This document shows positions 14,525-61,617 of a DNA stretch of 64,000 bases, piece after piece. The stretch is from the sequence record OR805294.1; one strand, written 5' to 3'. The notes beneath the pieces were generated by a model, which was given only the letters and a program-made list of their open reading frames with translations, did no database searches and was not told where the DNA came from. The translations under genes were made by a program, and so were the position numbers. Each line of letters begins with the position of its first letter. Within the stretch, counting starts at the first letter, position 1.

Positions 14525-14746
14525 CATATAAAAGTATGCGTATAATTTGCACATATAACGCAATAGCACAGCAACAAACAAAACGTAATAAAAAAATGTT
14601 GCAATAGCTTAAAAGTTTTAGTATAATAAGCACATAACAACGCAATACAGTTTACAAACAAAACGTAATAAAAAATGTTGCAATAGCTTAAAAGTTTTAG
14701 TATAATAAGCGTATAATGCAGCTTATATAACAAGTTAAAAACCCCT
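14525..14746. other. GA/TC-free island (222 nt) covering the tRNA-operon promoters
   Basis: no GA or TC by hand scan. Confidence 0.85.
14574..14710 (+). promoter_or_regulatory. tandemly duplicated sigma70 promoter (57-58 bp direct repeat) for the tRNA operon
   Basis: copies 14574-14631 and 14654-14710, each A-rich UP + TTGCAA-17-TATAAT. Confidence 0.85.
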
Positions 14747-14819
14747 CGGTAGCTCAGTTGGTTAGAGCGCGCGACTCATAATCGCTAGGTCACTGGTTCG
14801 AATCCAGTTCGAGGGACCA
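14743..14819 (+). tRNA. tRNA-CAU (Ile2/lysidine-type or elongator Met), copy 1
   Basis: full cloverleaf, anticodon arm CGCGA-CTCATAA-TCGCT, CCA end. Confidence 0.9.
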
Positions 14820-14841
14820 ATTTTAAGATGTTGTGCTTTTA

Positions 14842-14926
14842 GCCCGAGTGGTGAAATTGGTAGACACAGGAGACTTAAAATCTCCCGCTTCGCAGCGTAC
14901 CGGTTCGAGTCCGGTCTCGGGTACCA
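14842..14926 (+). tRNA. tRNA-Leu(UAA), copy 1
   Basis: cloverleaf with long variable arm, CCA. Confidence 0.95.
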
Positions 14927-14976
14927 AACAAAAGATATAAATACTTAACAAGATAGGAAACTATTCTAAAATTAAA

Positions 14977-15052
14977 TGGCTAGTAGCTCAGTTGGTAGAG
15001 CAAGTGACTGTTAATCATTGGGTCGTAGGTTCGAGTCCTACCTAGCCAGCCA
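14977..15052 (+). tRNA. tRNA-Asn(GUU)
   Basis: cloverleaf, U1-A72, G73, CCA. Confidence 0.95.
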
Positions 15053-15078
15053 ATTACACTTTGTTGTATATTCAATAT

Positions 15079-15154
<76 letters not shown>

Positions 15155-15223
15155 ATTTTAAATAACATTTGTATCTAAAGAGATACAATAGTCTAAATAA
15201 AATATTCATATAATGTTTCAAAC

Positions 15224-15300
15224 GGGACTTTAGCTCAGTTGGTTAGAGCGCGCGACTCATAATCGCTAGGTCACTGGTTCGAATCCAGTAAGTCCCACCA
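15224..15300 (+). tRNA. tRNA-CAU (Ile2/lysidine-type or elongator Met), copy 2
   Basis: same D, anticodon and T arms as copy 1; acceptor GGGACTT/AAGTCCC; CCA. Confidence 0.9.
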
Positions 15301-15350
15301 ATTTTTATATACAAATCAAACTATACTTAAACTATATAATGAATGAATAT

Positions 15351-15435
15351 GCCCGGTTGGTGAAATCGGTAGACACAGGAGACTTAAAATCTCCCGACGA
15401 AAGTCGTGCCAGTTCGAGTCTGGCACCGGGCACCA
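15351..15435 (+). tRNA. tRNA-Leu(UAA), copy 2
   Basis: cloverleaf with long variable arm, CCA. Confidence 0.95.
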
Positions 15436-15444
15436 AACTCCTAC

Positions 15445-15476
15445 AAAAGGAACATATTATAGTATGTTCCTTTTTT
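15445..15476 (+). terminator. terminator of the first tRNA operon
   Basis: AAAAGGAACATA/TATGTTCCTTTT plus T-run. Confidence 0.8.
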
Positions 15477-15661
15477 ATTATGATATTTTTATTATGAATG
15501 AAATAATGCATATATCTGCCAACACATACGTAATAGAATATCGCGTATTAAACAAGTTAGTAGTCACTATAAAAAATAATAGATCTTTTACATTATGGGT
15601 ACATTTTGATATCGGTACATTTTCTATGGCATGGAAATACAATGCAATATAGAATTAAAAA

Positions 15662-15823
15662 ATGAAATACATTATTAATTTACAATACTCAACAGAAGTA
15701 ATATATATGCCGTGTTTCAACATAATATCGTTATGCGATAATAGATCTGTTACTATCCTTTCTATTACTATGATATTTAAGATAAGATACTATTTGCATC
15801 CGATGTTCCGTTATATTCTATAA
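15662..15823 (+). pseudogene. truncated or single-unit member of the paralog family
   Basis: MKYIINLQYSTEVI start motif, stops after 53 aa. Confidence 0.45.
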
Positions 15824-16297
15824 TACATAATATTTTTATTGTAACAAATACCAGAAGTGCTTAGATAATATATAGCAATTCTGTTTATTATCGATATTGC
15901 GGTATACTTAGTATTTCTTATTAACCGTATTACATAGAATAAAGAATGGAAAAAATTTTAACTATTTCACATAAAACATTAATATGTGAACTGTCGTTAT
16001 TAAACTGGTCGAAATCCATAGTTTGTGCATATTCTGGCGAAATAATATGGTATGTTCGGTTGCATAAGAAATGTTATGTAGTACAGCTAAGATGATAATG
16101 AACTGTATTTTTTCCTATTCGTACTATTTAGAACGCATCGTATGTCATGCAAAAATCTACAAAGGGTTTGTAGTCAGTAAAAATACTTTTTGTGAGAAAT
16201 CCGTAATAGCTTTATACTTAATAAATAGTGGTAGTTATTTTCATAAATGTTATGTCGATCATTACTTAATTGTATAGATATATTTTAATAAAAATAG

Positions 16298-16326
16298 TTG
16301 ACCGAACAAACAAAACAGTATATAAT
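16298..16326 (+). promoter_or_regulatory. sigma70 promoter for tRNA-Arg
   Basis: TTGACC-17-TATAAT. Confidence 0.75.
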
Positions 16327-16377
16327 GTTACGCATATAAAGCATTATTACAAAGCTATCATTAGTTGCACAAGATAT

Positions 16378-16454
16378 GCGCTCGTAGCTCAGCTGGATAG
16401 AGCATCCGCCTTCTAAGCGGATGGTCGGGGGTTCGAATCCCTCCGGGCGCGCCA
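16378..16454 (+). tRNA. tRNA-Arg(UCU)
   Basis: cloverleaf, CCA. Confidence 0.95.
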
Positions 16455-16722
16455 ATTTTAAAGAGTGTTGTGTTATGCAAACAATAAGATTTGACATAAG
16501 ACTTCTTCGTTATAGTATGAAACAAGGTTTCTGTTGCATAGGTAAAGATATATTTGAAGTGTGCAGAAAAACTCGGATCAGTCCAGGTCAGCTAAACTTA
16601 CGAAAAAATTATATAGGACGAGTATTAATCGGAATTGATTCGAACTACAATCTGCACAATACCTGTTTAGTAGGCTGGACTCGCTATAAAAATATTATAG
16701 TATAAAAATTTATATTAATAAT

Positions 16723-16965
16723 ATGAATAGATGCAAAGAACATCTACAATACAGAACAATCAAAAAGCATACATTAACTTGTAGGAAATGCAAAGAGTTA
16801 TCGTTACAAATAAAATTATTTTGGCTTCAACAACAAGCATTCAGTATTAGAACCGATACTAGCGGAATATACATATTCGATATTAAATATAATTCTATTT
16901 ACGTATACTCTGTAGCTTGGTATAATACAGAATTATACGGTAAAGGGAAAATAATTTTAGAATAA
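16723..16965 (+). CDS. hypothetical protein
   Basis: ORF; CxxC. Confidence 0.5.
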   Translation: MNRCKEHLQYRTIKKHTLTCRKCKELSLQIKLFWLQQQAFSIRTDTSGIYIFDIKYNSIYVYSVAWYNTELYGKGKIILE

Positions 16966-16993
16966 ACATGTATATATAAGAGTACCTCAAATA

Positions 16994-17326
16994 ATGAATA
17001 ATTATTCTAATGATACAGATATTCTAAAATGGATAAAGCGTAACAATAGAAAAAATGCACGTCTAATTTCATATATAGACGGAATATATAATATTGTTTA
17101 TTTCGATGGCGGAAAAGCAAGAGTTGGCATAGTAAAAGACAATATGCACTGCAGATACGGAATACATAGTCGTGGATCTATGTATTCGAAAGATATAATG
17201 AGCCTGTGGCAATCTAGTACAGGTTCGTGTTCGCCCGATGATGTAAAGATTATGCAAGATTATCTAGACGATAAATGCATACTTCCGGAATTTGATTTTT
17301 CTCAGATTAAAAATTTAAAATGGTAA
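16994..17326 (+). CDS. hypothetical protein within the tRNA region
   Basis: 110-aa ORF with balanced composition. Confidence 0.7.
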   Translation: MNNYSNDTDILKWIKRNNRKNARLISYIDGIYNIVYFDGGKARVGIVKDNMHCRYGIHSRGSMYSKDIMSLWQSSTGSCSPDDVKIMQDYLDDKCILPEFDFSQIKNLKW

Positions 17327-17349
17327 ATAATATAACAATATAGTTTTAT

Positions 17350-17426
17350 CGCAGGGTATGCAAGAGGTCTAAGCAGAAAGGCTCATAACCTTTTTATCGT
17401 GGGTTCGAATCCCACCCCTGCAACCA
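17350..17426 (+). tRNA. initiator-type tRNA-fMet(CAU), atypical
   Basis: C1:A72 mismatch, CAT anticodon, CCA; only two G-C pairs next to the anticodon loop. Confidence 0.8.
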
Positions 17427-17435
17427 GTTTTATAT

Positions 17436-17512
17436 CTAGGCATAGCTCAAGTAGGTAGAGCACTTGCTTTGGGAGCAAGAGGTTGGGGATTCGAGGTCTC
17501 CTGCCTAGACCA
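17436..17512 (+). tRNA. tRNA-Pro(UGG)
   Basis: C1-G72, A73, CCA. Confidence 0.9.
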
Positions 17513-17521
17513 ATTTACTAT

Positions 17522-17594
17522 GCAGTCCTAGCTCAATTGGTAGAGCACTGTCCTTCCAAGTCAGATGTTACGGGTTCGAGTCCCGTGGGCTGCT
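17522..17594 (+). tRNA. tRNA-Gly(UCC) lacking an encoded CCA
   Basis: cloverleaf, U73, followed by CAA; U30:U40 mismatch. Confidence 0.8.
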
Positions 17595-18323
17595 CAATAT
17601 TCTAATATAATCGATGATTCGTGTAGTGGATAAATATGGAAGTATAGTTATACCATCTAATATAACGGTGCTGGAAATACAGGCATACACAACAGAGTTA
17701 GTGTATGTAAGAAAATCTCATTGTTTATGTTTATACATTCCTAATATAGGAAATTATGCTTTATGGTTTTTAGACAGATAGGATAAAAATATAAATCGAT
17801 ATTGTTCTGTTTAAGGAACCAACATTAAATGGCAGGTTGCATATTTAGACTCGATTTGTCTATTTTTCGTGAAAATGTATATAGTATTTCTAGGTTGTCT
17901 TATACAAAATCTATATGTGTTTCAATAAAAACTAAACCGACAAGCAATAGAAGACAATTAGAAATATATGTTGTAGATAAAACAACTGATTTTTTAGTTG
18001 CATGCAAATATTTTTAGCTTATCTATTTTGACTTGCCTTTAAAATAAATAACCATTATATATTTGATATAACAACTATTCTAAATAGAAATAAAACCATA
18101 AATACACATAATAACGGTGTGGATTTATGGAAAACATATTTAGGATATCTATTAATGCTAACGAAGGTATTATACGAATATCCCCTACTTACTTTTTTAA
18201 TGGTGTTTTTTATTCAAAGCATTTGAATATTTTTATAATAGATCCCGACGGATATCTAATAAGAAAAATATATACTTGTAGTACATTCTTATGATGATTT
18301 CTTTTAAATATACAAAATAGCAT

Positions 18324-18352
18324 TTGACACAAGTATAATTATTTCGTATAAT
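18324..18352 (+). promoter_or_regulatory. consensus sigma70 promoter
   Basis: TTGACA-17-TATAAT. Confidence 0.85.
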
Positions 18353-18383
18353 AAGTGTATAAAATAACAAAAGAGAATTTTAA

Positions 18384-18743
18384 ATGATTTCCAAAATTCA
18401 AATTGTATACGGAATATATCTTCCTACTGCTGATGCAAAAATTATATACGAAGACTCGGAATACGAATCTAATAAAATAAATAAAAATATTAGATTATTT
18501 GCAAATGATGCATATTTAGAAGATAAGATTTTAGAAAATAAGGAATTCGAAGATAATCCCTATGTTCCGCACTTTTATGGTATTTTTTGTAAAGAATTCG
18601 ATAATGACCAAAGTGCATACTTATATAATGTTCCCAAATCTTTTATAGATGAATATAATAATGTAGCTCCAGCTATTTTGGCTAGACTCGGTTATTTAGA
18701 TAGAGTTGCAGGAAAACAACATTGTAGAATAATCTACGAATAG
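18384..18743 (+). CDS. hypothetical protein
   Basis: ORF directly after consensus promoter. Confidence 0.75.
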   Translation: MISKIQIVYGIYLPTADAKIIYEDSEYESNKINKNIRLFANDAYLEDKILENKEFEDNPYVPHFYGIFCKEFDNDQSAYLYNVPKSFIDEYNNVAPAILARLGYLDRVAGKQHCRIIYE

Positions 18744-18757
18744 AATTAACTAGTTTT

Positions 18758-18847
18758 GGAGAGGTGATAGAGTCTGGTTTATTATACTAGTCTTGAAAAC
18801 TAGCGGATCGAAAGGTCCCGTGGGTTCGAATCCCACCCTCTCCGCCA
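18758..18847 (+). tRNA. tRNA-Ser(UGA)
   Basis: long variable arm, G73, CCA. Confidence 0.9.
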
Positions 18848-18852
18848 AATAT

Positions 18853-18942
18853 AGATACTTGACCGAGTGGCTTAAGGTGCTTCCCTGCTAAGGAAGTGAG
18901 TTTGAAAAAGCTCCGTAGGTTCGAATCCTACAGTATCTGCCA
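18853..18942 (+). tRNA. tRNA-Ser(GCU)
   Basis: long variable arm, G73, CCA; terminator at 18949-18976 follows. Confidence 0.9.
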
Positions 18943-42034: not shown

Positions 42035-42254
42035 GTTTCCAAATTCAATTTTAGGCACAAACTCGGATCCGCATTTGCATTTTGCATTTACATTTTGTGT
42101 TCTGAGTGTATATGCAAAATGCAATCGCGCATGTTGTCGATGCATTGGCTAATCTTTTATTTTTGATAGTTTAGAAAAGATTAAGAACAGAAACTATCTG
42201 TAAATTAATAAAAATAACATTTACATTACATACACATATGCATATACTATATAC

Positions 42255-42532
42255 AAGTTATGCGCTGTTGCATACGTAAATACCTCCTATGTTGTTTAGA
42301 TATGTCGATTCTGGTATAACCAGATAGACCTAAGGATGATGCTAGTGATTCCTTAGTATTGTATATTCTAGCTGAGTATAAAGAGTAAGGGGCTTTATAC
42401 AAATAACAATTCCTTAGGCAAGATATACCGCTCCGTTGTGCTGACGAGCATAATTTGCCCAGATACAGAGCACGTGACTGGTCTGAGGAGCATTTATATC
42501 AGAAAGGCAGACTTATGTTTGCCTTTCTTTTT
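42255..42532 (+). ncRNA. candidate ncRNA B (~280 nt)
   Basis: TTTACA(42220)-17-TATACT promoter, nested helices, intrinsic terminator 42501-42532, no ORF. Confidence 0.7.
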
Positions 42533-42550
42533 GAGCAGATATTCTCTTAT

Positions 42551-42629
42551 TCACTTCCTTATTCATTTCTTTATTCATCTCTATTTCGTTTGTCACTTCC
42601 TTATTCATTTCTTTATTCATCTCTATTTC
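42551..42629. repeat. pyrimidine-rich 37-bp direct repeat x2
   Basis: TCACTTCCTTATTCATTTCTTTATTCATCTCTATTTC at 42551 and 42593. Confidence 0.85.
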
Positions 42630-42639
42630 ATTTGTTATT

Positions 42640-42757
42640 GCAAATAAGACTAATTCTTATTTGCGTTTGTAATTTCATTTGTTATTGCAAATAAGACTAA
42701 TTCGTATTTGCATTTGCAACGAAAAAGAATATGCAAATAATAACTAATCTTATTTGC
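42640..42757. promoter_or_regulatory. cluster of three 25-bp palindromic boxes (Fur-box-like)
   Basis: GCAAATAAGACTAATTCTTATTTGC at 42640, variants at 42687 and 42733. Confidence 0.75.
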
Positions 42758-42931
42758 ATTTGCACTGCCTAGTATATGGATTGGTAGCATACTTGGAAAT
42801 GGATAGTAAATAAGTAGTTGATTTGTTTATAAATTATACTTCTACACCATACAGATTGACCTTGCTATATATAGCTCGTGCGCGCGTATACAAGATGGTA
42901 AAAAATAATTTAAAAATATTTTAAAAAATGC

Positions 42932-46326: not shown

Positions 46327-46524
46327 ATGAAAAAACAAACAGGATTTACAGATTGGCCATTGATTAGTTTGGGTACAATTATTATCTTGTGTGTATGGGT
46401 ATTAATTCTACAATACACAGAAATAAATGTACTAGAAGAAAAATGTAACAAAGTAGGTGGTATTTTTAATAACACCGTTTGCATACGGTCAGATGCAATT
46501 ATTAACTTAGATAAGGTAAAATAA
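46327..46524 (+). CDS. small protein with TM anchor and C-terminal Cys pair
   Basis: GAGGA RBS; EEKCNKVGG...C. Confidence 0.7.
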   Translation: MKKQTGFTDWPLISLGTIIILCVWVLILQYTEINVLEEKCNKVGGIFNNTVCIRSDAIINLDKVK

Positions 46525-46525
46525 A

Positions 46526-46783
46526 ATGCCAAAACTTTACGTTAACAAAAAACATGATACCATTTATCTTCAATTAGATCATTTCTCATCTAATACTGTA
46601 TCTCCAATTAATTATAACGAAGATGTAGAATATGTAATTGATAGGGTCCGTAGTCTGCACAAATCCGGCTTCGGATTTAGTCATATGAATACTCTACAAG
46701 AATATCTTACGGCAAGAACAGAGCAGGATAAGAAGTTTAAGCTTAAAGTAGAAGACTTCGAAGTAGTATCATTTAAGATTTAA
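46526..46783 (+). CDS. hypothetical protein
   Basis: AAGGT RBS. Confidence 0.7.
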   Translation: MPKLYVNKKHDTIYLQLDHFSSNTVSPINYNEDVEYVIDRVRSLHKSGFGFSHMNTLQEYLTARTEQDKKFKLKVEDFEVVSFKI

Positions 46784-46804
46784 AATTATACATAATCAAA
46801 GTAT

Positions 46805-46833
46805 TTGACATTTGATGTGTATACTAGTATAAT
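46805..46833 (+). promoter_or_regulatory. perfect sigma70 promoter driving an ORF-free transcript
   Basis: TTGACA-17-TATAAT. Confidence 0.9.
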
Positions 46834-46839
46834 TTGCTC

Positions 46840-47570
46840 ATGCTGTCGTAACAGCTACTTTGTTCCATTCACAAGCAGCTCTGTTCCATTATTGGATATT
46901 GGTAGTAGAAACTATCCCCATCGTGCCCACAGTATTGTTCTGTTAGAGACAGATTAAAGCATACAAAAGTGGGTTATTTAAATTATGATTTTGGGTGCTG
47001 AAGTATAGTCGTTAGACAAGGATATGTCTAATGTTGCAAAGGACTATGCGAAACGTATTATATATCTTATCCGATAATAGATATGTAATAAAAGGATGAA
47101 GCTCTGGTAGAAACAGAGTGTAATTCTTGCTTGTATTTCGCACGGATATACAAAAGAATATACACACCAACTTCAGCATTGATGTAAATTTTCTAGCATA
47201 GGTATATAACATCGATGTTCCGGGATTCATTGGAAACAATGAGAGAATGATGTAATCTGAGGAAAAAGGTCCCCGCCTCGTCCATATTACGAAATGGTTT
47301 TGAGTACTTATGCCCTCGTCCTATATTGGCATATGGGTTTTATATTTCTCCCGTAATTACGGGAGAATATAATTTCCTGAACCTACTTGGAAATGGACGC
47401 TTCTGCTGTGCAAAGCACAGCATCTAAGGGCCTTCACCCTTACCGCTAAGAGCAAGAGCAAAAGCAATATAATTACAAATAAGAATTAATTATTGTTTAG
47501 TTTTATCGTAATGAATATGAAGATAAAAACTAAACAATAATTCACATGTAGCGTTAGCTACTGTGAATAT
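46840..47570 (+). ncRNA. candidate large ornate ncRNA C (~600-730 nt)
   Basis: consensus promoter, no + strand ORF, more than 12 helices including long-range TGCTGAAG/CTTCAGCA. Confidence 0.75.
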
Positions 47571-47699
47571 CTACTATAGTATTAACCATATATGTATACA
47601 AGGGCATAATATGGCTGTTACTTGTTGACAGTTTGATATATGTGTTACACTGCATAAATCAAATGTACATTACAATGTTTTGATTATTAGGAACATACT

Positions 47700-48290
47700 A
47701 TGTCATTTTCTTTGACTGCTGCTATTAATCGATATACTAGTCTAATAGAAGAAAATTTCAAAATAAATTATCTGAAGAATTTTGCGTCAGGATATATCTC
47801 ATATAAATTACTAAGAAATAAAGCACTCCTGCATACTGAAATATCACATGGACGTGATTATATAAAGGTAATTATTTCTTATACATATGTAGAAAATAAT
47901 GTTGAATTAGATATAAAATCATCTATTGTACATTCGTATATTTCTACTACTGATTGCTCTAAATTTAAAGTAGGAGATATAAGAACGTTTTACGATTCAG
48001 TTCCTCGTGGAAATGTTTTTAATATTAAAGAGAATACTCAAGTTAGCTGGTCAACAGCTAATATTGGAATTTACGAGAATCCGTTTAATCTTAATTATAT
48101 CTCGAACAATAAGTATATTCGATTAGAAACAGGAGATATATTTGTCTGTATTAATGACAGTATGGTAAATGAACTACAAGAACATATGCATGTTCATTCT
48201 ATATGTACTAACAAAACAAAGAAGTTTTATGTAAAAGAAATTGATTTAAACATGCTACATTACAAAAACACATTATGGAATAAAGAATGA
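47700..48290 (+). CDS. hypothetical protein
   Basis: 196-aa ORF, AGGA RBS. Confidence 0.75.
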   Translation: MSFSLTAAINRYTSLIEENFKINYLKNFASGYISYKLLRNKALLHTEISHGRDYIKVIISYTYVENNVELDIKSSIVHSYISTTDCSKFKVGDIRTFYDSVPRGNVFNIKENTQVSWSTANIGIYENPFNLNYISNNKYIRLETGDIFVCINDSMVNELQEHMHVHSICTNKTKKFYVKEIDLNMLHYKNTLWNKE

Positions 48291-48835
48291 ACTACAAAGC
48301 ATTAGAAGTATTTTATTTCTTTCTAGAACATTACAAGGTAAATCCAGTTGCCGACTTGGAATTTAAATTCGAACCCTCGGGTAGTGATGATCAATCTAAG
48401 CGCAAGTCATCACTGTCGTTTGTTAAACGCATTGGTGTTCTTACTCCTTCATTTAACGAATTATACGAAGTTCAGAATCGATTCATGACAGATCTTCGAG
48501 AAATGAATGTAGTATATAAGATAGGATTTAATTATAATGCATTCAACGTATTAGCACCTTTGTATGCAAGATATGAAAAGAATGTAAAAGAATTTCGTCG
48601 ACTTTTAAAGAAATACTCAAGTTTCAACGAAGTAACAGAATATTACAAAAAAGCCAACAATATGTTACCGGACAATGTATACGAAACAATGAAGGAAGAT
48701 TTTTCATTGTTTAATGACGTTACTACAAAGAGGTTATCTGAAATAAAACTTTGTTATCCTAATTGGCAAGTATGGGATTCTGAACATCCCAACTGGGAAA
48801 CAATAAATCAACTTTATAAGAATGCAAAGAAATAA
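48287..48835 (+). CDS. hypothetical protein
   Basis: 182-aa coupled ORF; terminator at 48846-48873. Confidence 0.75.
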   Translation: MNYKALEVFYFFLEHYKVNPVADLEFKFEPSGSDDQSKRKSSLSFVKRIGVLTPSFNELYEVQNRFMTDLREMNVVYKIGFNYNAFNVLAPLYARYEKNVKEFRRLLKKYSSFNEVTEYYKKANNMLPDNVYETMKEDFSLFNDVTTKRLSEIKLCYPNWQVWDSEHPNWETINQLYKNAKK

Positions 48836-48963
48836 TGCATATTTAGAAAGGGAATTATAATTCCCTTTCTTTTTGGATCTATATTAGCAAATGCTAATTA
48901 ATCTTATTTGCACAAATTTAATCCTATTGTGTTTTCTATTTTGAAGTGCTACATTACATGTAG

Positions 48964-49551
48964 TTGCATAAAACTATATACAGGAGAAATGATATGTGCT
49001 ATGCATGGGATATCAAAGACGGGGATGATATCGAAGTCGAAGCAGTTATGGATGAACGAAGCTATGAGTGGACCGGCAAGTTACGTATCATCCAGTATCG
49101 GACCCTTCAATCAGCTCAGTGGCGGGTTATTATCAATATAGTAGAATTTTGGAGTCATTTAACTGAAAGTATATTGAACGAACTTGGCATAGAAGCTAAA
49201 CACATCACTAAAGGATATGCCACACTTAGTATGGTTCGTTTCCCGGATGTTGATTACCTATTTAGTGTAACACCCGATAATGCAGATTATGTAACTGTTA
49301 ACCACAGTGCAGTAGATATTTCTGACAGTTGGTTTGTTGCAAAAAATATAAAAGCAGTTATGTATCACTTGGGATCTGAAATCCAGATCACTCCGTGGTT
49401 TGTGCGTAAAGATAGTAGTGAGTCAAACTTCGATTGTATTGATCGATTAGTAGCTCTAGTAAAAGAGAATACTGATGTTGACACGTATCAGTACATCAAA
49501 GTAGGTTGTCCTCAAGACAAGTCATTTTACTTTGCGTGGATAGACAAATAA
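48964..49551 (+). CDS. hypothetical protein (start probably 48989)
   Basis: AGGAGA RBS. Confidence 0.75.
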   Translation: MHKTIYRRNDMCYAWDIKDGDDIEVEAVMDERSYEWTGKLRIIQYRTLQSAQWRVIINIVEFWSHLTESILNELGIEAKHITKGYATLSMVRFPDVDYLFSVTPDNADYVTVNHSAVDISDSWFVAKNIKAVMYHLGSEIQITPWFVRKDSSESNFDCIDRLVALVKENTDVDTYQYIKVGCPQDKSFYFAWIDK

Positions 49552-49640
49552 TTCGTTTGCTATACGTACTAATACGTTGTATACTGTTAGTACGCATAGT
49601 AGAAGTAACACATAACGTTTTGATTTAATGGAGCCTTAAC

Positions 49641-49892
49641 ATGAAAGAAGAATTTGAATCGTGGATTCGGACTCGTTCTTCAGCGCCGCTTGCGTATAAT
49701 GCAGTCGACGACTTGTACCTCAACCCGCATGTTCAGGCACGCTACGAGGCTTGGAAAGCCAGTCGTGTGGCACTAAGGGTAGTGTTGCCGAAATCCCAGA
49801 TGGCGTTAGATTACGCGCCCAAAACAAAAGTTTTCAATACAATCGACATGGAATTGGCCCTCCGGCAAGCCGGAATAGAGGTGAAGCCATGA
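49641..49892 (+). CDS. Pseudomonas temperate-phage-like hypothetical protein
   Basis: EEFESW ... YEAWKASRVALRVVLP pattern; GC shift. Confidence 0.7.
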   Translation: MKEEFESWIRTRSSAPLAYNAVDDLYLNPHVQARYEAWKASRVALRVVLPKSQMALDYAPKTKVFNTIDMELALRQAGIEVKP

Positions 49893-50098
49893 AGACATTT
49901 TTGAAGATGCTCGCATATTGCGTGCTTGGGACATCCATTGGCATTGCCATCAGCCAATGGTTCATCTTCGTCCTAGAGATGAGGCTTGGCGCCGTGCTCT
50001 GGTACATCGTTGGCCTTGGTCCTGTGCTGCTTGTGTTTTGCATTTTGGGCAGCTTCCTTCAATGGCTGATTCATAAGAACTTGGAGAAAAAGCAATGA
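49889..50098 (+). CDS. small membrane protein
   Basis: ATGA-coupled start at 49889; two TM segments. Confidence 0.7.
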   Translation: MKTFLKMLAYCVLGTSIGIAISQWFIFVLEMRLGAVLWYIVGLGPVLLVFCILGSFLQWLIHKNLEKKQ

Positions 50099-50169
50099 CC
50101 GACCACGCAGAGCTGCGGAGGCTGGCTAAAGAAGTGATCCGAATTGAACGAAATGAGGATGCAGCATGA
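50095..50169 (+). pseudogene. 24-aa remnant MTDHAELRRLAKEV...
   Basis: ATGA-coupled at both ends; start typical of Ead/Ea22-like genes. Confidence 0.5.
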
Positions 50170-50681
50170 GCATTGACTGGAGCAAGGCACCAGAGGGCGC
50201 GACTCATTGGGAGCCAACAGGACTTGAGTTCAATGAAAGATGGATGAAGAAAGAAGGGAATGGCTGGTTCTTTTGGGGGCTAGGTGCAGAATGGAAATAC
50301 GGGGGTGATGTATCCGCAGAGCGTGAGGCGACATTCGAGGCTAGACCGCAAGAGGCCTGGGACGGCCAGGGTCTACCGCCGGTTGGCCTGATGGTGGAGT
50401 GGAAGGCAGGCCTTGATCACGACTGGCAGCGCGTAACCGTGCTTGCCTACGCCAATGGCGACGCGTGGTTTCAGCCCGAGGATGGCCCGTCTTTCATCGT
50501 CGGCAACCCGGCAAACTTCAGGCGTATCCGCACCCCCGAGCAGTTGGCCGCCGAGGAGCGGGAAAAGGCGATTAATCAGATGATTTCTGATGCTGGATAC
50601 GTAGATCCGAAGATTGGCACATTTGTGGCTATGCGCAATCTCTACGACGCCGGCTACCGGCGCCGGGAGGAAGGGAAATGA
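50166..50681 (+). CDS. Pseudomonas phage hypothetical protein (IDWSKAPEGATH family)
   Basis: MSIDWSKAPEGATHW ... WDGQGLPPVG ... FRRIRTPEQLAAEEREKA. Confidence 0.8.
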   Translation: MSIDWSKAPEGATHWEPTGLEFNERWMKKEGNGWFFWGLGAEWKYGGDVSAEREATFEARPQEAWDGQGLPPVGLMVEWKAGLDHDWQRVTVLAYANGDAWFQPEDGPSFIVGNPANFRRIRTPEQLAAEEREKAINQMISDAGYVDPKIGTFVAMRNLYDAGYRRREEGK

Positions 50682-50944
50682 GCAGACTGACAGCTGAGCA
50701 AGCCCGTGACATAGCGCGAGCGAAAGACGATGTCGATACTATCCTCAACGACATCGCCAAAACAGCCGCAGAAGGAAAGTACGTGTACACTACCCGCGCC
50801 TATGGGTTCGGCACAGGCGGCGGACGGCGCAGCGACGCGATCCTCAAAGTGTTGCGTAGCCTCGGCTACGACTGTGCGGTGCATGCTGAGGGACGCCAGT
50901 CTGTCGACCTGTGGCTTGAAGTGAAATGGGGAGACAAGCCATGA
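50678..50944 (+). CDS. hypothetical protein
   Basis: coupled GC-rich ORF. Confidence 0.75.
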   Translation: MSRLTAEQARDIARAKDDVDTILNDIAKTAAEGKYVYTTRAYGFGTGGGRRSDAILKVLRSLGYDCAVHAEGRQSVDLWLEVKWGDKP

Positions 50945-51360
50945 CTAACAACCCCGGAGATTCAAAAATGATCGTAGAAAACGCCAAGCAAGCCGCCGAA
51001 GACTTCAAAACTTCCATGGCTAAGATTTTTCCGAATTACATCGCCGGTGCGTCGGTTTCCGATAACCTTGGTCCGGCGATGACAATTTCGTTTGCGAATG
51101 TCGGTTGCGCTTCCGAAGCCCCTAACAGCATTCTGATAAATGCGAGCGGTTACATGCGCTTTATGATGCATTTGTGTGACAATTGCGGGAATGTATTGCC
51201 AGAAGGTTCGCCGGTAGAAATTGAGCTGCTAATGTGGTCTATCCCCTATCGTTCGGAAGTAATCAAGTTCCGCAAGATCAAGGGCAAGACACCAGCCGAA
51301 GCTATGCAAAAGCTAGTCAAGTGGTTTGAAAAAAACGCCGAAGCTATCCGGGGTCTGTAA
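50941..51360 (+). CDS. hypothetical protein
   Basis: ATGA-coupled; C-terminal FRKIKGKTPAEAMQKLVKWF. Confidence 0.75.
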   Translation: MTNNPGDSKMIVENAKQAAEDFKTSMAKIFPNYIAGASVSDNLGPAMTISFANVGCASEAPNSILINASGYMRFMMHLCDNCGNVLPEGSPVEIELLMWSIPYRSEVIKFRKIKGKTPAEAMQKLVKWFEKNAEAIRGL

Positions 51361-51384
51361 TGGTCTCCACGTAGGACACGCAGA

Positions 51385-51786
51385 ATGAACATTGTGTTGG
51401 ACAAATTGCTGTTTGGCGGTTTCATCGACCAGCACCGCAATGAACTTGCCCAGCAACAACTGAATCGGTTGTTTGCCAAGTACGGTGAGCCGAAGATTGG
51501 TATCACACGGGCATGCTTTCTATCTAAGCATTACGTCCTGAAGTTCCCGATTAATGACAGGGGTGAGCGGTGCAACGATTGGGAAGGTAGCTGTTCCGGC
51601 AGCTACTTGGCACGCGGACGCTGGCTAGAAATCGGAGGCTTCATTTGCGTCATGCAAGAGCGTTTGGTTGAAGTGGATTGGAAGAACAACACCCATGCAA
51701 ACTTTCCTGATTGGGTAGGCAGCATAGATTGTGGTCAAGTCGGCTACGATAAACATGGCGTTCTGAAAGCGTATGACTTCGGGTGA
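51385..51786 (+). CDS. miniature protein-kinase-like fold protein
   Basis: G..R..F, VLKFP, NDWE, D..Q.G, terminal AYDFG. Confidence 0.55.
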   Translation: MNIVLDKLLFGGFIDQHRNELAQQQLNRLFAKYGEPKIGITRACFLSKHYVLKFPINDRGERCNDWEGSCSGSYLARGRWLEIGGFICVMQERLVEVDWKNNTHANFPDWVGSIDCGQVGYDKHGVLKAYDFG

Positions 51787-51789
51787 AGC

Positions 51790-52074
51790 ATGACCATCAA
51801 TTTGTTTGTCGTCAACATAAAGAACGAACCTATCCCAACCGACCACAAGTCGATACTCCGCTATCTTGGCCTTAGCCTGCACACGCAAGGCCGTCGCGTA
51901 TCTGCCAAATTCAGCAGCGGTAAGTTGAAGCTGAACAACTACAACATCGAATTTTTTCACATGGCGGACGAGAACGATGAACTTCGCCGCCTTTGCTCCT
52001 GCGCTAAGCAATATAACCTCAGCATGACACTGCGCAGAATGATTGACGCAGTCCTTAAAAGAGACAAGCCATGA
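51790..52074 (+). CDS. hypothetical protein
   Basis: coupled ORF. Confidence 0.65.
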   Translation: MTINLFVVNIKNEPIPTDHKSILRYLGLSLHTQGRRVSAKFSSGKLKLNNYNIEFFHMADENDELRRLCSCAKQYNLSMTLRRMIDAVLKRDKP

Positions 52075-52259
52075 CCGACATTAAAAAGCTGAAGGAGTTA
52101 GCGGAACGGGCTACTCCTGGTCCCTGGTCTGCGTCTTGGAAGGAAGGCGATGACCATTTGGGGCGAATTGCTTACTTCGTGTCAACTGGTCAATACAACA
52201 TCACAAAAGAAACAGTCTTCGACATAGTGAATGTGGTTCCCGAAAATGTGTGCTCCTGA
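52071..52259 (+). CDS. Ead/Ea22-like protein, short or truncated
   Basis: LKELAERATPGPW. Confidence 0.65.
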   Translation: MTDIKKLKELAERATPGPWSASWKEGDDHLGRIAYFVSTGQYNITKETVFDIVNVVPENVCS

Positions 52260-52401
52260 CGCATCTACAGCATGGGAGGCTGCCTTTGTGTTTTTCACAC
52301 TCGCAGGAGGCCCATTGCTTTGCTGTATTGCAATTCTTCTAGCGCCGGAGCCATGCCGACAGACCAAACACACCCAGCGATAAGCGGGAAGAGAGGAATC
52401 C

Positions 52402-52506
52402 ATGCCAACCCTTTTTGAGTTCGCTGCAATGTGGGGAATTCTGCTTCTGACGATGTTTTTGCCGATCCGTTTGAATCGTCGCCCTATTCAACCGCAAGAC
52501 GCCTGA
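52402..52506 (+). CDS. 34-aa membrane peptide
   Basis: GAGAGGA RBS; MPTLFEFAAMWGILLLTMFLPIRL. Confidence 0.6.
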   Translation: MPTLFEFAAMWGILLLTMFLPIRLNRRPIQPQDA

Positions 52507-52522
52507 CAGGCAGGAGAACAGA

Positions 52523-52810
52523 ATGAGCATCGTTAAAGTTGCCACTTTCCGAAACGCTGTCGCCCACCTTTTCCGCGTGGTCAATGTCGACTATCACGCT
52601 TGCGTCCGCCCGGCTGAGCTGCGCAACTGGCAAAGCATCGCTATCCGCGTTCTAGCCGAAGTCAATGCTCTAGAATGCAAGCGAGCCAACCAGGATGACC
52701 GTGATTACCAGCGCTGCACTGTCGATGCTGCCCGCGAACGTATAAGCCAAGCCGACTTGCGGCTCGCCCAGCTCGAAGCTGCCGGTGACCTCAAAGAAGA
52801 CAAAAAATAA
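52523..52810 (+). CDS. hypothetical protein
   Basis: AGGAGA RBS, GC-rich. Confidence 0.8.
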   Translation: MSIVKVATFRNAVAHLFRVVNVDYHACVRPAELRNWQSIAIRVLAEVNALECKRANQDDRDYQRCTVDAARERISQADLRLAQLEAAGDLKEDKK

Positions 52811-55696: not shown

Positions 55697-56055
55697 AAAA
55701 AGCTCTTTCAAGTGTATTAGGTATCATTGTTCTGTTACTAGGCGTATTTATGGTAGATAATCCTACAATAGGATTAATGCTAGGAGGGTTAGTAGGTAGT
55801 TATATTTTCAGCATAGGCGGAGTAATTCTATGTGTTATATCGTTTATGATATTTGCACTTGCCTTTGTTGAGATGAAATGAATAAATGCATAAACAGGTA
55901 CTGTATAAAAATAAAGAAAGATTAGATTTTGTCTGTAATAGTTATATATTTTTCAATGTAATATTCTTCATTTTCATTGCATGCGTTACAAAATAGATCA
56001 CAAAAAGTTTTAAAATTCAGTTTACAGCATGCATAGTTTTACGTATTATAAACAC

Positions 56056-56360
56056 ACAAAGCAATACAGCATAACGCATTGTAAGCAACACTAAACGGGA
56101 GACACCGTCCCGCAAGCAGCCCGCCCGCGATGTTCGCGGGCTGCGGCAAACAGGTGTACAAGGTCTAGTAACGTGGAAGGCGCAGCATACCTTTCCCTAA
56201 ATCGGAAATCGGTCAATGACGTACCTGCCCCTGGACACTGCTAGACCTTGCTGCTACAGGCGGGACAGCTACAAAGGTACACTGTATGTATCTATGCTTT
56301 ACCCCGCTTTGTAGCAGGTCTTAAAACGGTCTACTGGCATATGCCTTAGTGCTAGTAGGA
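56056..56360 (+). ncRNA. candidate GC-rich structured ncRNA D (~300 nt)
   Basis: TTTACA(56021)-17-TATTAT promoter, no + strand ORF, 9-12 bp helices. Confidence 0.7.
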
Positions 56361-56819
56361 ATCATTAACCTAAAACTATTATATGCTTCCTGGAGGTGAA
56401 GAGTATGCCGCCGCAGCATTAAATATACATTATGATGATGATAATTATGAATGCCGAAACACCGCTTCGATTCGTTTAAAAGACAGATGTCTGAATCGAA
56501 TGTTTTTGGGCAAAAAGGTCCCTTAGATGGGATTTTTTTGCGGCTGTTAACTAGCAAACGCGAATTAATCTTATTTGCAATTTAAGAAAAATACCAGTTG
56601 ACTGTAGCTTGTTAACATAGTACATTTAACTCATAAATCCGCAGGAGTAGCAGTTATGTCGCTGAAAAAGAAACTTTTAAATTCTGTGCAGATTAAATAT
56701 TTCGGCAACATTTATACTTACATTTATGATGCCGTTCATGACGTTATTTATTTCGATAACCAGCAAATGTCTTATGCCGAATTTGAAGAGGCAGTAGACT
56801 GTAAGCTAGGAGAAGTTCT

Positions 56820-61502: not shown

Positions 61503-61617
61503 TTGCAAATACAAATAATAATTATTCTTATTTGTATTTGCGATTAATTCTTATTTGTAATTGCGATTAATTCTTATTTGCTACAATAGATAGAATAAGA
61601 ATAATTCACATTTGCAA
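61503..61617. promoter_or_regulatory. second cluster of Fur-box-like palindromes
   Basis: AATAATAATTATTCTTATT, 2x GCGATTAATTCTTATTTG, AATAAGAATAATTCACATT (61594). Confidence 0.7.

Follow-up and report, generated by a model that had tools for sequence, protein, structure and literature searches.

What does a perfect consensus promoter transcribe when no sizeable reading frame follows it? The question is raised by positions 46805-47570 of a 64,000-nucleotide (nt) stretch of sequence record OR805294.1 (the window throughout), where an earlier note, made from the letters alone, had proposed a large structured non-coding RNA (ncRNA). We examined this locus, here called C, together with its relatives in other phage genomes. 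C is very probably a real gene for a structured ncRNA on the + strand (~46840-47380) and belongs to a family of three copies. The core of the proposal was upheld by covariation among paralogues and orthologues and by homology to ncRNA004, a published transcript of phage PA5oct; the proposed extent to 47570 was not. Homology, a conserved fold, the strand and the conservation of the promoter are established here. The three RNAs would form an undescribed, genus-restricted family with ncRNA004 as its type member and C as a new member.

Locus C in PA5oct-like phages

By its identity to known genomes, the window is that of a Wroclawvirus, a PA5oct-like Pseudomonas jumbo phage. Phage Ettore is 100% identical to 916 bases around locus C, and ten further Wroclawvirus records (including PA5oct, MIJ3, Paride, Deifobo, Cassandra, Callisto, PAC2, 30-2 and 30-3) are 98.3-99.2% identical. 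In PA5oct, whose coordinates become window coordinates by adding 33,974, C corresponds to an unannotated 910-bp gap between EST35_0049 and EST35_0050. This gap sits within the 39-kb terminal repeat, the genes of which are the strongest-transcribed early genes. Five records made with a permissive gene caller (Ettore, Paride, PAC2, Deifobo and Cassandra) carry three or four tiny 'hypothetical proteins' at C, and four other records have no coding sequence (CDS) annotated there. The PA5oct paper reports four ncRNAs based on RNA sequencing (RNA-seq), none of them at the C locus (PMC7318152); the 2018 preprint had listed five (10.1101/406421).

A family of three loci

A 35-nt stretch of C (46893-46927) recurs exactly at ~76.0 kb of PA5oct, within a 131-nt match of 83% identity. 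This second paralogue, P2 (PA5oct 75,833-76,800), spans ~970 nt without a credible open reading frame (ORF) and is not annotated as ncRNA; the annotation places three tiny CDS there in PA5oct (EST35_0143-0145) and six in Ettore. The third paralogue, N4, is PA5oct ncRNA004 itself (246,116-246,734), annotated from RNA-seq as a discrete transcript, ~1 kb ahead of the nearest downstream gene on the + strand (PMC7318152). With their surroundings, the modules of P2 and N4 cover PA5oct 75,790-77,180 and 245,980-247,300. BLAST aligned C with N4 in two blocks, of 128 nt (80% identity) and 29 nt (93%), and nhmmer found the pair colinear over ~365 nt (C 30-392 with N4 42-415, E=4.4e-27). nhmmer also matched C to P2, with E=3e-23 in the 5' domain and E=7e-4 in the second block. 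All three loci are present in 11 of 11 genomes at 97-100% identity, and a covariance model of the family (below) found copy C alone in the 64-kb window.

Already known is ncRNA004 as a published, uncharacterised transcript; the PA5oct paper reports no structure and no relationship among its ncRNAs (PMC7318152). The two paralogues of ncRNA004, their shared covarying fold and the membership of C were not found in the searchable literature or in Rfam. The genes downstream of C, P2 and N4 are mutually unrelated and without recognisable domains; paralogy among them was considered and rejected, none being found across the three loci. Behind N4 lie ~550 nt of strongly AT-rich DNA that contain direct repeats, a 23-mer that recurs and a canonical terminator.

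The RNA family appears confined to one phage genus. Two flanking proteins had no match in IMG/VR when used to seek distant homologues; DNA motifs, of which four were scanned against IMG/VR, two against GTDB genomes and one against JGI metagenomes, yielded chance matches or nothing; and protein searches returned Wroclawvirus alone. The phage family holds a single genus.

A physical DNA end or cos site at 46898-46921 had been suspected since contigs of at least nine independent runs stop there with a 24-nt overlap. Short-read contigs start at 46898 or end at 46889-46921, the two sides overlapping by less than k-1. We rejected a DNA end because the 35-nt repeat is longer than k=31 and predicts those contig ends as an assembly branch.

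A conserved four-way junction at the 5' end

When the 5' domains of the three paralogues (124-129 nt) were folded separately by minimum free energy (MFE), one common four-way junction emerged. Its parts in C are as follows.

46876-47000, + strand: 5' domain, a four-way junction of 125 nt with the same architecture in the three paralogues
46876-79/46997-47000, + strand: helix P1
46885-88/46893-96, + strand: helix P2
46901-06/46911-16, + strand: helix P3
46917-24/46985-95, + strand: helix P4
46925-30/46969-74, + strand: helix P5
46932-35/46961-64, + strand: helix P6
46939-44/46948-53, + strand: helix P7

Junctions and internal loops are invariant across the paralogues, as are helices P2 (UCCA/UGGA), P3 (GGUAGU/ACUAUC) and P4 (CCCA/UGGG and UCGU/AUGA), which are identical in all three. 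Helices P1, P5, P6 and P7 covary. P1 is formed by CAGC/GCUG in C, GCAGC/GCUGC in paralogue P2 and UGGC/GCCA in N4; P5 by GCCCAC/GUGGGU, GCCUUU/AAAGGU and GCUGUUA/UAACAGU in the same order; P6 by GUAU/AUAC, CUGU/GCAG and UGU/ACG; and P7 by UCUGUU/GACAGA, CCGUU/GACGG and UCCGAU/GUCGGG.

A covariance model was trained on the C and P2 sequences only, the N4 copies being held out. The N4 copies were recovered end to end with 114-120 bits, compared with 161 for C and 146 for P2. Standard pairs filled 98.8% of alignment cells, against 34-49% with slid partners; ten pairs were changed on both sides, against 0-3 in the slid controls; and the covariation score reached 0.306, against at most 0.079. None of 500 shuffles reached the observed values. 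Some of the covarying helices join strands up to 120 nt apart. Four G-U pairs of the 5' domain are invariant, and several more alternate with A-U; because of the invariant G-U pairs, we read the folded molecule as + strand RNA, and not as duplex DNA or antisense.

The 4-nt loop of helix P2 (46885-46896 and the paralogue equivalents) is a mutational hot spot, found as UUAU, UUAC, UUAG, UCAU and UAAC with the stem intact. At the helix P2 site, the N4 copy of Cassandra has G-U in place of one A-U pair.

Conserved motifs on divergent stems

Beyond the junction, C, P2 and N4 share common elements in a common order, in which the hairpin stems are unrelated and the short motifs are kept. The elements of C are listed below.

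47003-47048, + strand: hairpin (ATAGTC/GACTAT around TTAGAC/GTCTAA) with an AAGGAU hexaloop (47019-47024) on an 8-bp stem; z=-4.5
47056-47090, + strand: hairpin of 12 bp found only in C, one pair being U-G (47061/47085); its sole variable site, 47077, lies in the loop
47091-47119, + strand: conserved block AAAGGAUGnnGCUCUGGUAGAAACAGAG with a hairpin at 47102-47118; its 29 nt match N4 at 93% identity (E=2e-6), and P2 has the block as well
47131-47153, + strand: hairpin UUGUAU.UC-GCACG-GA.AUACAA with CACGGA, variable at 47137, 47140, 47142 and 47145
47164-47171, + strand: conserved single-stranded motif ACACCAAC; alike in N4 in order and spacing, ACCAAC in P2
47176-47218, + strand: 10-bp hairpin directly before the UUCCGG motif; unrelated hairpins of 13 bp (N4) and 7 bp (P2) take this place
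47218-47242, + strand: motif UUCCGGGA, then the hairpin UCAUUG-GAAA-CAAUGA; the motif is UUCCGGCA in N4 and UUCCGGGA in P2
47258-47279, + strand: UGAGG...CCCCGCCUC element with a C-rich loop, read directly from the sequence; local folds are weak
47340-47372, + strand: GC-rich terminator-like hairpin followed by UAUAAUUUCC, flagged by the scan; z=-4.9
47404-47422, + strand: 8-bp hairpin with a hypervariable loop; C-G to A-U at 47406/47420 in Deifobo
47491-47568, strand unassigned: tandem double hairpin, a 17-20-bp AT-rich stem (47491-47539) and then a second stem (47540-47568); z=-8.0

The first of these hairpins has equivalents with unrelated stems, closed by an AAGGAC hexaloop in N4 and a 12-nt AAAAGGAAUAUA loop in P2. 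After this AAGGA-loop hairpin comes the second block of all three paralogues, AAAGGAUGnnGCUCUGGUAGAAA. A hairpin, ACACCAAC, a second hairpin and directly then UUCCGGNA follow one another in every copy, and a UGAGG...CCCGCCUC element is again common to the three. Tentatively, the C-rich loop may form a 4-bp pseudoknot with the GGGA of UUCCGGGA, for which N4 offers GGCA/UGCC, a single compensatory change.

The 3' hairpins of N4 and P2 (11-12 bp) are equivalent in place and unrelated in stem; over the family they range from 9 to 12 bp with a U-rich stretch after them, and z runs from -4.4 to -6.2. In two phages a 1-nt deletion at 47345 takes out the bulge of this hairpin in C. Downstream of N4 and P2 stands a like double hairpin with other stems, of which P2 and N4 share a 32-nt core. 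The double hairpin at 47491-47568 may be part of the RNA or, alternatively, a DNA or terminator element.

Across phages the loop at 47412-47414 is found as AAA or TTT and as GAA or TTC, pairs that are mutually reverse-complementary. Such a pattern marks a palindrome whose loop has been inverted repeatedly by template switching.

Promoter, reading frames and limits of the presumed transcript

The perfect consensus promoter that the earlier note described is present, and so is the long stretch without a + strand ORF behind it. The features that bound the transcript are these.

46805-46833, + strand: sigma-70 consensus promoter of C, TTGACA-17-TATAAT, score 12/12
46840-47380, + strand: presumed ncRNA transcript of ~540 nt, its 5' end placed from the -10 box and its 3' end by homology to ncRNA004
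47625-47651, + strand: promoter of the next gene (start at 47700), TTGACA, a 15-nt spacer and TGn-TACACT, read directly from the sequence

The window holds three TTGAC-N17-19-TATAAT sites. The other two (16298-16326 and 18324-18352) lie in the tRNA cluster, among tRNAs spanning 14743-18939, and consensus promoters in the window seem to be reserved for stable RNA genes. In 10 genomes the promoter hexamers of C are invariant; variation falls in the spacer (46824) and just past the -10 box (46836/46837). Paralogue P2 has a 12/12 TTGACA-17-TATAAT promoter of its own with a TG extension, and the N4 promoter scores 10/12. From 46805 to the ATG at 47700 no + strand ORF is longer than 50 aa, and the one of this length (46805-46957) has the TTG of the -35 box as its first codon. 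At the promoter of the next gene, the -35 hexamer is invariant and the spacer variable; our promoter scan demanded a spacer of 16-18 nt and so left this promoter unlisted.

Transcription of C would begin at ~46840. Its 3' end most likely lies near 47375-47390, because the ncRNA004 annotation stops 21 nt past the equivalent GC-rich hairpin; an RNA reaching 47570, as once proposed, is not supported by that annotated end. Just 3' of the presumed end, at 47448-47468, seven consecutive A-R-N triplets (AAG AGC AAG AGC AAA AGC AAU) form a tract of the type bound by the distal face of Hfq, with no obvious conservation in the paralogues.

Conservation among orthologues

In an orthologue alignment of 10 genomes and 11 kb, nucleotide diversity at 46857-47456 was 0.003-0.014, compared with 0.011-0.047 in the upstream genes and 0.04-0.24 in the downstream genes. 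C is the most conserved stretch of a mosaic early region; nearby, only the published ncRNA001 is comparable. A metagenomic contig encodes a downstream protein that is 88% identical and carries an RNA region more than 99% identical.

The substitutions that do occur respect the fold. When 19 substitution columns were placed on the MFE structure of the window sequence, three pairs were broken against 7.2 expected (P=0.016). Two pairs changed in a compensatory manner: 46928/46971 from C-G to U-A in 30-3 and two metagenomic contigs, and 47406/47420 from C-G to A-U in Deifobo. U-G/U-A switches at 46953 and 46959 would be mismatches on the opposite strand. Single-base deletions at 47345 and 47525 take out bulges, and the freely variable positions (46892, 47077, 47140-47142 and 47412-47414) lie in loops.

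Predicted helices and known RNA families

The single hairpins listed in the earlier note are all there (46842-46855, 47003-47048, 47056-47090, 47227-47242, 47340-47372, 47404-47422 and 47491-47539), and several fold well below their shuffles (z from -4.5 to -8). One of these hairpins precedes the junction.

46842-46855, + strand: 5' terminal hairpin GCUGU-CGUA-ACAGC, invariant in orthologues and hence uninformative on covariation

The long-range helix TGCTGAAGT/ACTTCAGCA (46996/47170), also proposed there, does exist but is uncorroborated: it has no counterpart in the paralogues, and it competes with helix P1. By our estimate ~6 perfect 9-mer helices of this kind are expected by chance per 1 kb. 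We rejected it as a helix that is not conserved and competes with the covariation-supported pairing 46876-46879/46997-47000. Two loops had been credited with CANGGA motifs. The motif at 47017 is invariant, and the paralogues carry it at the corresponding position; the one at 47141 is not kept, position 47145 being changed from G to A in Deifobo.

At gathering threshold, Rfam recognised 12 tRNAs alone in the 64 kb, and its best hit on the C region was a sub-threshold match to RT-14 (E=0.58). The ROOL and GOLLD models gave no match at E<=10 on 46700-47750, nor at E<=1 on the paralogues. RsmY/RsmZ, known ribozymes and riboswitches had no Rfam match on the C region, and ARAGORN found no tRNA or transfer-messenger RNA, nor tRNA-like elements, at 46500-47900. 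Because the Rfam searches of C and its paralogues were negative, we rejected membership in ROOL or GOLLD, an assignment that the earlier note had raised.

A proposed role and its rivals

The combination of an invariant junction with fixed short motifs on freely varying stems would suit an RNA whose task is to present binding sites or to form a defined core. We infer that C is transcribed, that it ends where ncRNA004 suggests, that it acts in trans and that it has a partner. Host sigma-70 RNA polymerase would start at the consensus promoter, so that C could be read as soon as the DNA enters, from the early-transcribed terminal repeat, and the transcript would probably end at the GC-rich hairpin near 47372. 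The RNA would open with the 125-nt four-way junction, followed by a row of hairpins with free stem sequences that may display a fixed series of motifs: the AAGGAN hexaloop, AAAGGAUG, ACACCAAC, UUCCGGNA and the CCCGCC loop. It might then act in trans as a scaffold or decoy platform for a partner common to all copies, most likely a protein, with the host CsrA-family proteins RsmA/RsmN as the most concrete candidates from the AAGGA sites. The divergent bodies could tune stability, timing or additional partners. Taken whole, as an ncRNA gene that serves as a trans-acting scaffold or decoy for a common partner, this statement is plausible, though we would stop short of calling it probable.

A number of observations weigh against it. 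The PA5oct authors called transcribed ORF-free regions ncRNAs and yet left the 910-nt gap at C blank, and ncRNA004 itself accounts for 0.02-0.08% of phage reads (PMC7318152). The 3' hairpins of N4 and P2 are not canonical terminators. The covariation comes from essentially three paralogue lineages plus near-identical orthologues, and the alignment behind its statistics was fitted to the model. Folding energy is of little help: a 706-nt stretch gave z=-6.2 against shuffles and its reverse strand z=-5.8, but over 540 nt C has z=-3.3, against a mean of -2.5 (s.d. 2.3) for thirty other 540-nt windows of the same genome; a background control was also made by a 200-nt scan. Thermodynamic stability alone does not distinguish C from the genome background. 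Since other 540-nt windows fold comparably, a shuffle z of about -6 is uninformative, and we rejected stability as proof of an ncRNA. The full-length MFE model of N4 breaks 5 pairs under orthologue variation, against 4.6 expected. Full-length MFE models were rejected on this ground, and our claims are limited to the 5' domain and local hairpins because N4 variation does not support the longer folds.

A different reading of the same RNA is that it belongs to a new class of large structured phage RNA, in which the junction core is the active centre, triplicated and fused to three bodies. The core may be a ligand- or protein-recognition module, a catalytic core or a self-assembly core. We regard this reading as unlikely, although, if true, it would mean an RNA-based device for host takeover or counter-defence that is expressed out of the terminal repeat from the first minute of infection and has no Rfam counterpart. 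An RNA-only self-assembling particle, similar to ROOL and GOLLD in its working and unrelated to them, would suit the size class (0.5-1 kb) and the phage-borne location, and the invariant loops and near-palindromic UUCCGG could make intermolecular contacts. Set against the missing Rfam similarity and an AT-rich RNA with a modest predicted fold, such a particle is very improbable. CsrA-family proteins prefer ANGGAN loops, as in RsmE/RsmZ structures, and known Rsm sponges carry one site per ~20-30 nt. If C were such a sponge, titrating the host repressors RsmA/RsmN through GGA motifs as RsmY, RsmZ, RsmV and RsmW do, the AAGGAU hexaloop on its 8-bp stem would fit the ANGGAN preference, as would the loops at the same place in N4 (AAGGAC) and P2 (AAAAGGAAUAUA). 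All three copies retain a further AAGGA within the AAAGGAUG block, and AAGGA is enriched in C (3 against 0.57 expected, P=0.011). However, GGA itself is not enriched in any paralogue (9/7.1 in C and 10/7.6 and 13/11.0 in the other two against dinucleotide shuffles, none significant), and about two conserved sites remain per 540-970 nt. The CACGGA at 47141 is lost in Deifobo, no RsmY/RsmZ model matched, and the invariant junction would go unexplained. A sponge therefore seems improbable to us; the tie to RsmA/CsrA suggested in the earlier note is left as a lead only, carried by the AAGGAN hexaloop hairpin and AAAGGAUG block, which are positionally conserved in three paralogues, and weakened by the GGA counts.

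The remaining rivals turn on what surrounds the RNA. The promoter of C points into the next genes, the U tract of the terminator-like hairpin is weak and this strand is densely transcribed in the early region, all of which would suit a cis-acting leader or processing region that drives the genes from 47700 through an 860-nt leader of hairpins. A cis-leader role shared by the copies is made unlikely by the unrelated genes downstream of the paralogues and by the conserved promoter that the next gene has for itself (47625-47651); ncRNA004, moreover, was annotated as a discrete transcript well upstream of its next gene, and we judge the leader improbable as well. Three dispersed copies with strong host-type promoters, each followed by a conserved AT-rich double hairpin, might also be three origins of replication, each with a structured pre-primer, like ColE1 RNA II or a T4-type R-loop, from which DNA synthesis would start in the AT-rich hairpins behind it. 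The AT-rich DNA with direct repeats after N4, the position of P2 and N4 at the divergence of leftward and rightward gene blocks and an RNase H-like phage protein in the PA5oct paper (PMC7318152) would agree with this. C, by contrast, lies inside a co-directional gene block with no GC-skew inflection. Invariant junction loops and covarying stems are not known to be required for T4-type R-loop origins, and an origin module appears quite improbable. Could the element act as DNA, as a packaging signal, a regulator-binding site, a cruciform region or a physical end? Its many perfect palindromes fold equally on both strands, hairpin loops invert, a copy of the repeated motif TCTTATTTGCATTTG lies at 47470-47484 and many independent contigs end at 46898/46921. 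The contig ends are explained by the 35-nt repeat, however, and invariant G-U pairs and G-U/A-U switches fit + strand RNA only, and helices with strands up to 120 nt apart covary; a DNA-level element is highly unlikely. As for the small proteins annotated in five records, such as the 50-aa ORF at 46805-46957, an open frame does run through the conserved 5' block in C and N4. Yet the 50-aa ORF opens with the -35 box, ahead of the point where transcription should begin, and lacks a ribosome-binding site; all three codon positions of the 35-nt core are unchanged between paralogues that have otherwise diverged by ~50%; the PA5oct P2 copy has an in-frame TAA; minus-strand ORF lengths differ between phages; four other records have no CDS; and coding cannot explain paired compensatory changes. 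Small protein genes are hardly credible here.

Other features of the early region

Two published ncRNAs of PA5oct fall within the window. ncRNA001 corresponds to ~42221-42535, with a promoter TTTACA-17-TATACT, an intrinsic terminator at 42502-42535 and a diversity of ~0.002. Beside it, the PA5oct CDS for an 'extensin-like protein' (~42477-42698) overlaps the terminator and tandem repeats and looks non-coding. ncRNA002 corresponds to ~56020-56540; its structured core (56090-56140) is rich in GC, and an intrinsic terminator occupies 56508-56540. The covariance model had no match there, so that ncRNA002 is unrelated to C, P2 and N4.

Directly downstream of the conserved RNA, the mosaic stretch 48350-52700 is hypervariable: whole genes are replaced from one phage to another, and diversity climbs from 0.08 to >0.8. 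The 15-nt motif TCTTATTTGCATTTG occurs 16 times in the window at two mismatches or fewer, against 1.55 expected, with copies at 42635-42762 (five), 53342, 56569, 61506-61563 (three), 62491, 63368, 44478 and, on the - strand, 47470-47484. Several stand right after intrinsic terminators, ahead of the next transcription unit. The motif is probably a binding site for an early-region regulator, and its repeats probably account for the short-read contig ends near 62.5 kb.

Significance and comparison with known systems

One 'putative long non-coding RNA (lncRNA)' and two blank or mis-annotated gaps become a defined RNA family with a testable structure, strand, boundaries and three loci, and ~15 spurious 'hypothetical protein' calls per genome are corrected in five GenBank records. 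Jumbo phages of the PA5oct/Paride group are studied as candidates for therapy and for the killing of dormant Pseudomonas, and their early region is mostly unexplained. Few large structured RNAs of phages are known, their functions being an open question, and the family is a further candidate for this group.

The nearest known relative is PA5oct ncRNA004, annotated as a 'putative lncRNA' (EST35_0353; PMC7318152). It is a true paralogue that has the junction, the GC-rich 3' hairpin and the double hairpin in common with C, its motifs following in the same order, and it differs in its locus, its unrelated body hairpin stems and its weaker promoter (10/12). ncRNA004 has RNA-seq support, whereas C has the perfect promoter and the position in the terminal repeat.

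ROOL and GOLLD form homo-oligomeric RNA complexes (PMC12286853). Like C, they are ncRNAs rich in helices that are associated with phages or prophages and measure 0.5-0.8 kb; unlike them, C is AT-rich, lies away from the tRNA cluster and is found in a single genus, and it has no covariance-model similarity to either at the thresholds used. C resembles ColE1 RNA II and the T4 R-loop origins in having a strong host-type promoter ~0.5 kb upstream of an AT-rich element, and RNA II is likewise folded, but C does not lie at a strand switch or skew switch.

RsmY and RsmZ, which are sponges for CsrA-family proteins, and the Hfq sponge CrcZ are trans-acting decoys that display short motifs on hairpins. 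C is similar to them in its ANGGAN-type hexaloop and its Shine-Dalgarno-like AAGGA block, both conserved. It differs in being 4-8 times longer, with about two conserved GGA sites and no enrichment, and in carrying an extra domain, the invariant junction.

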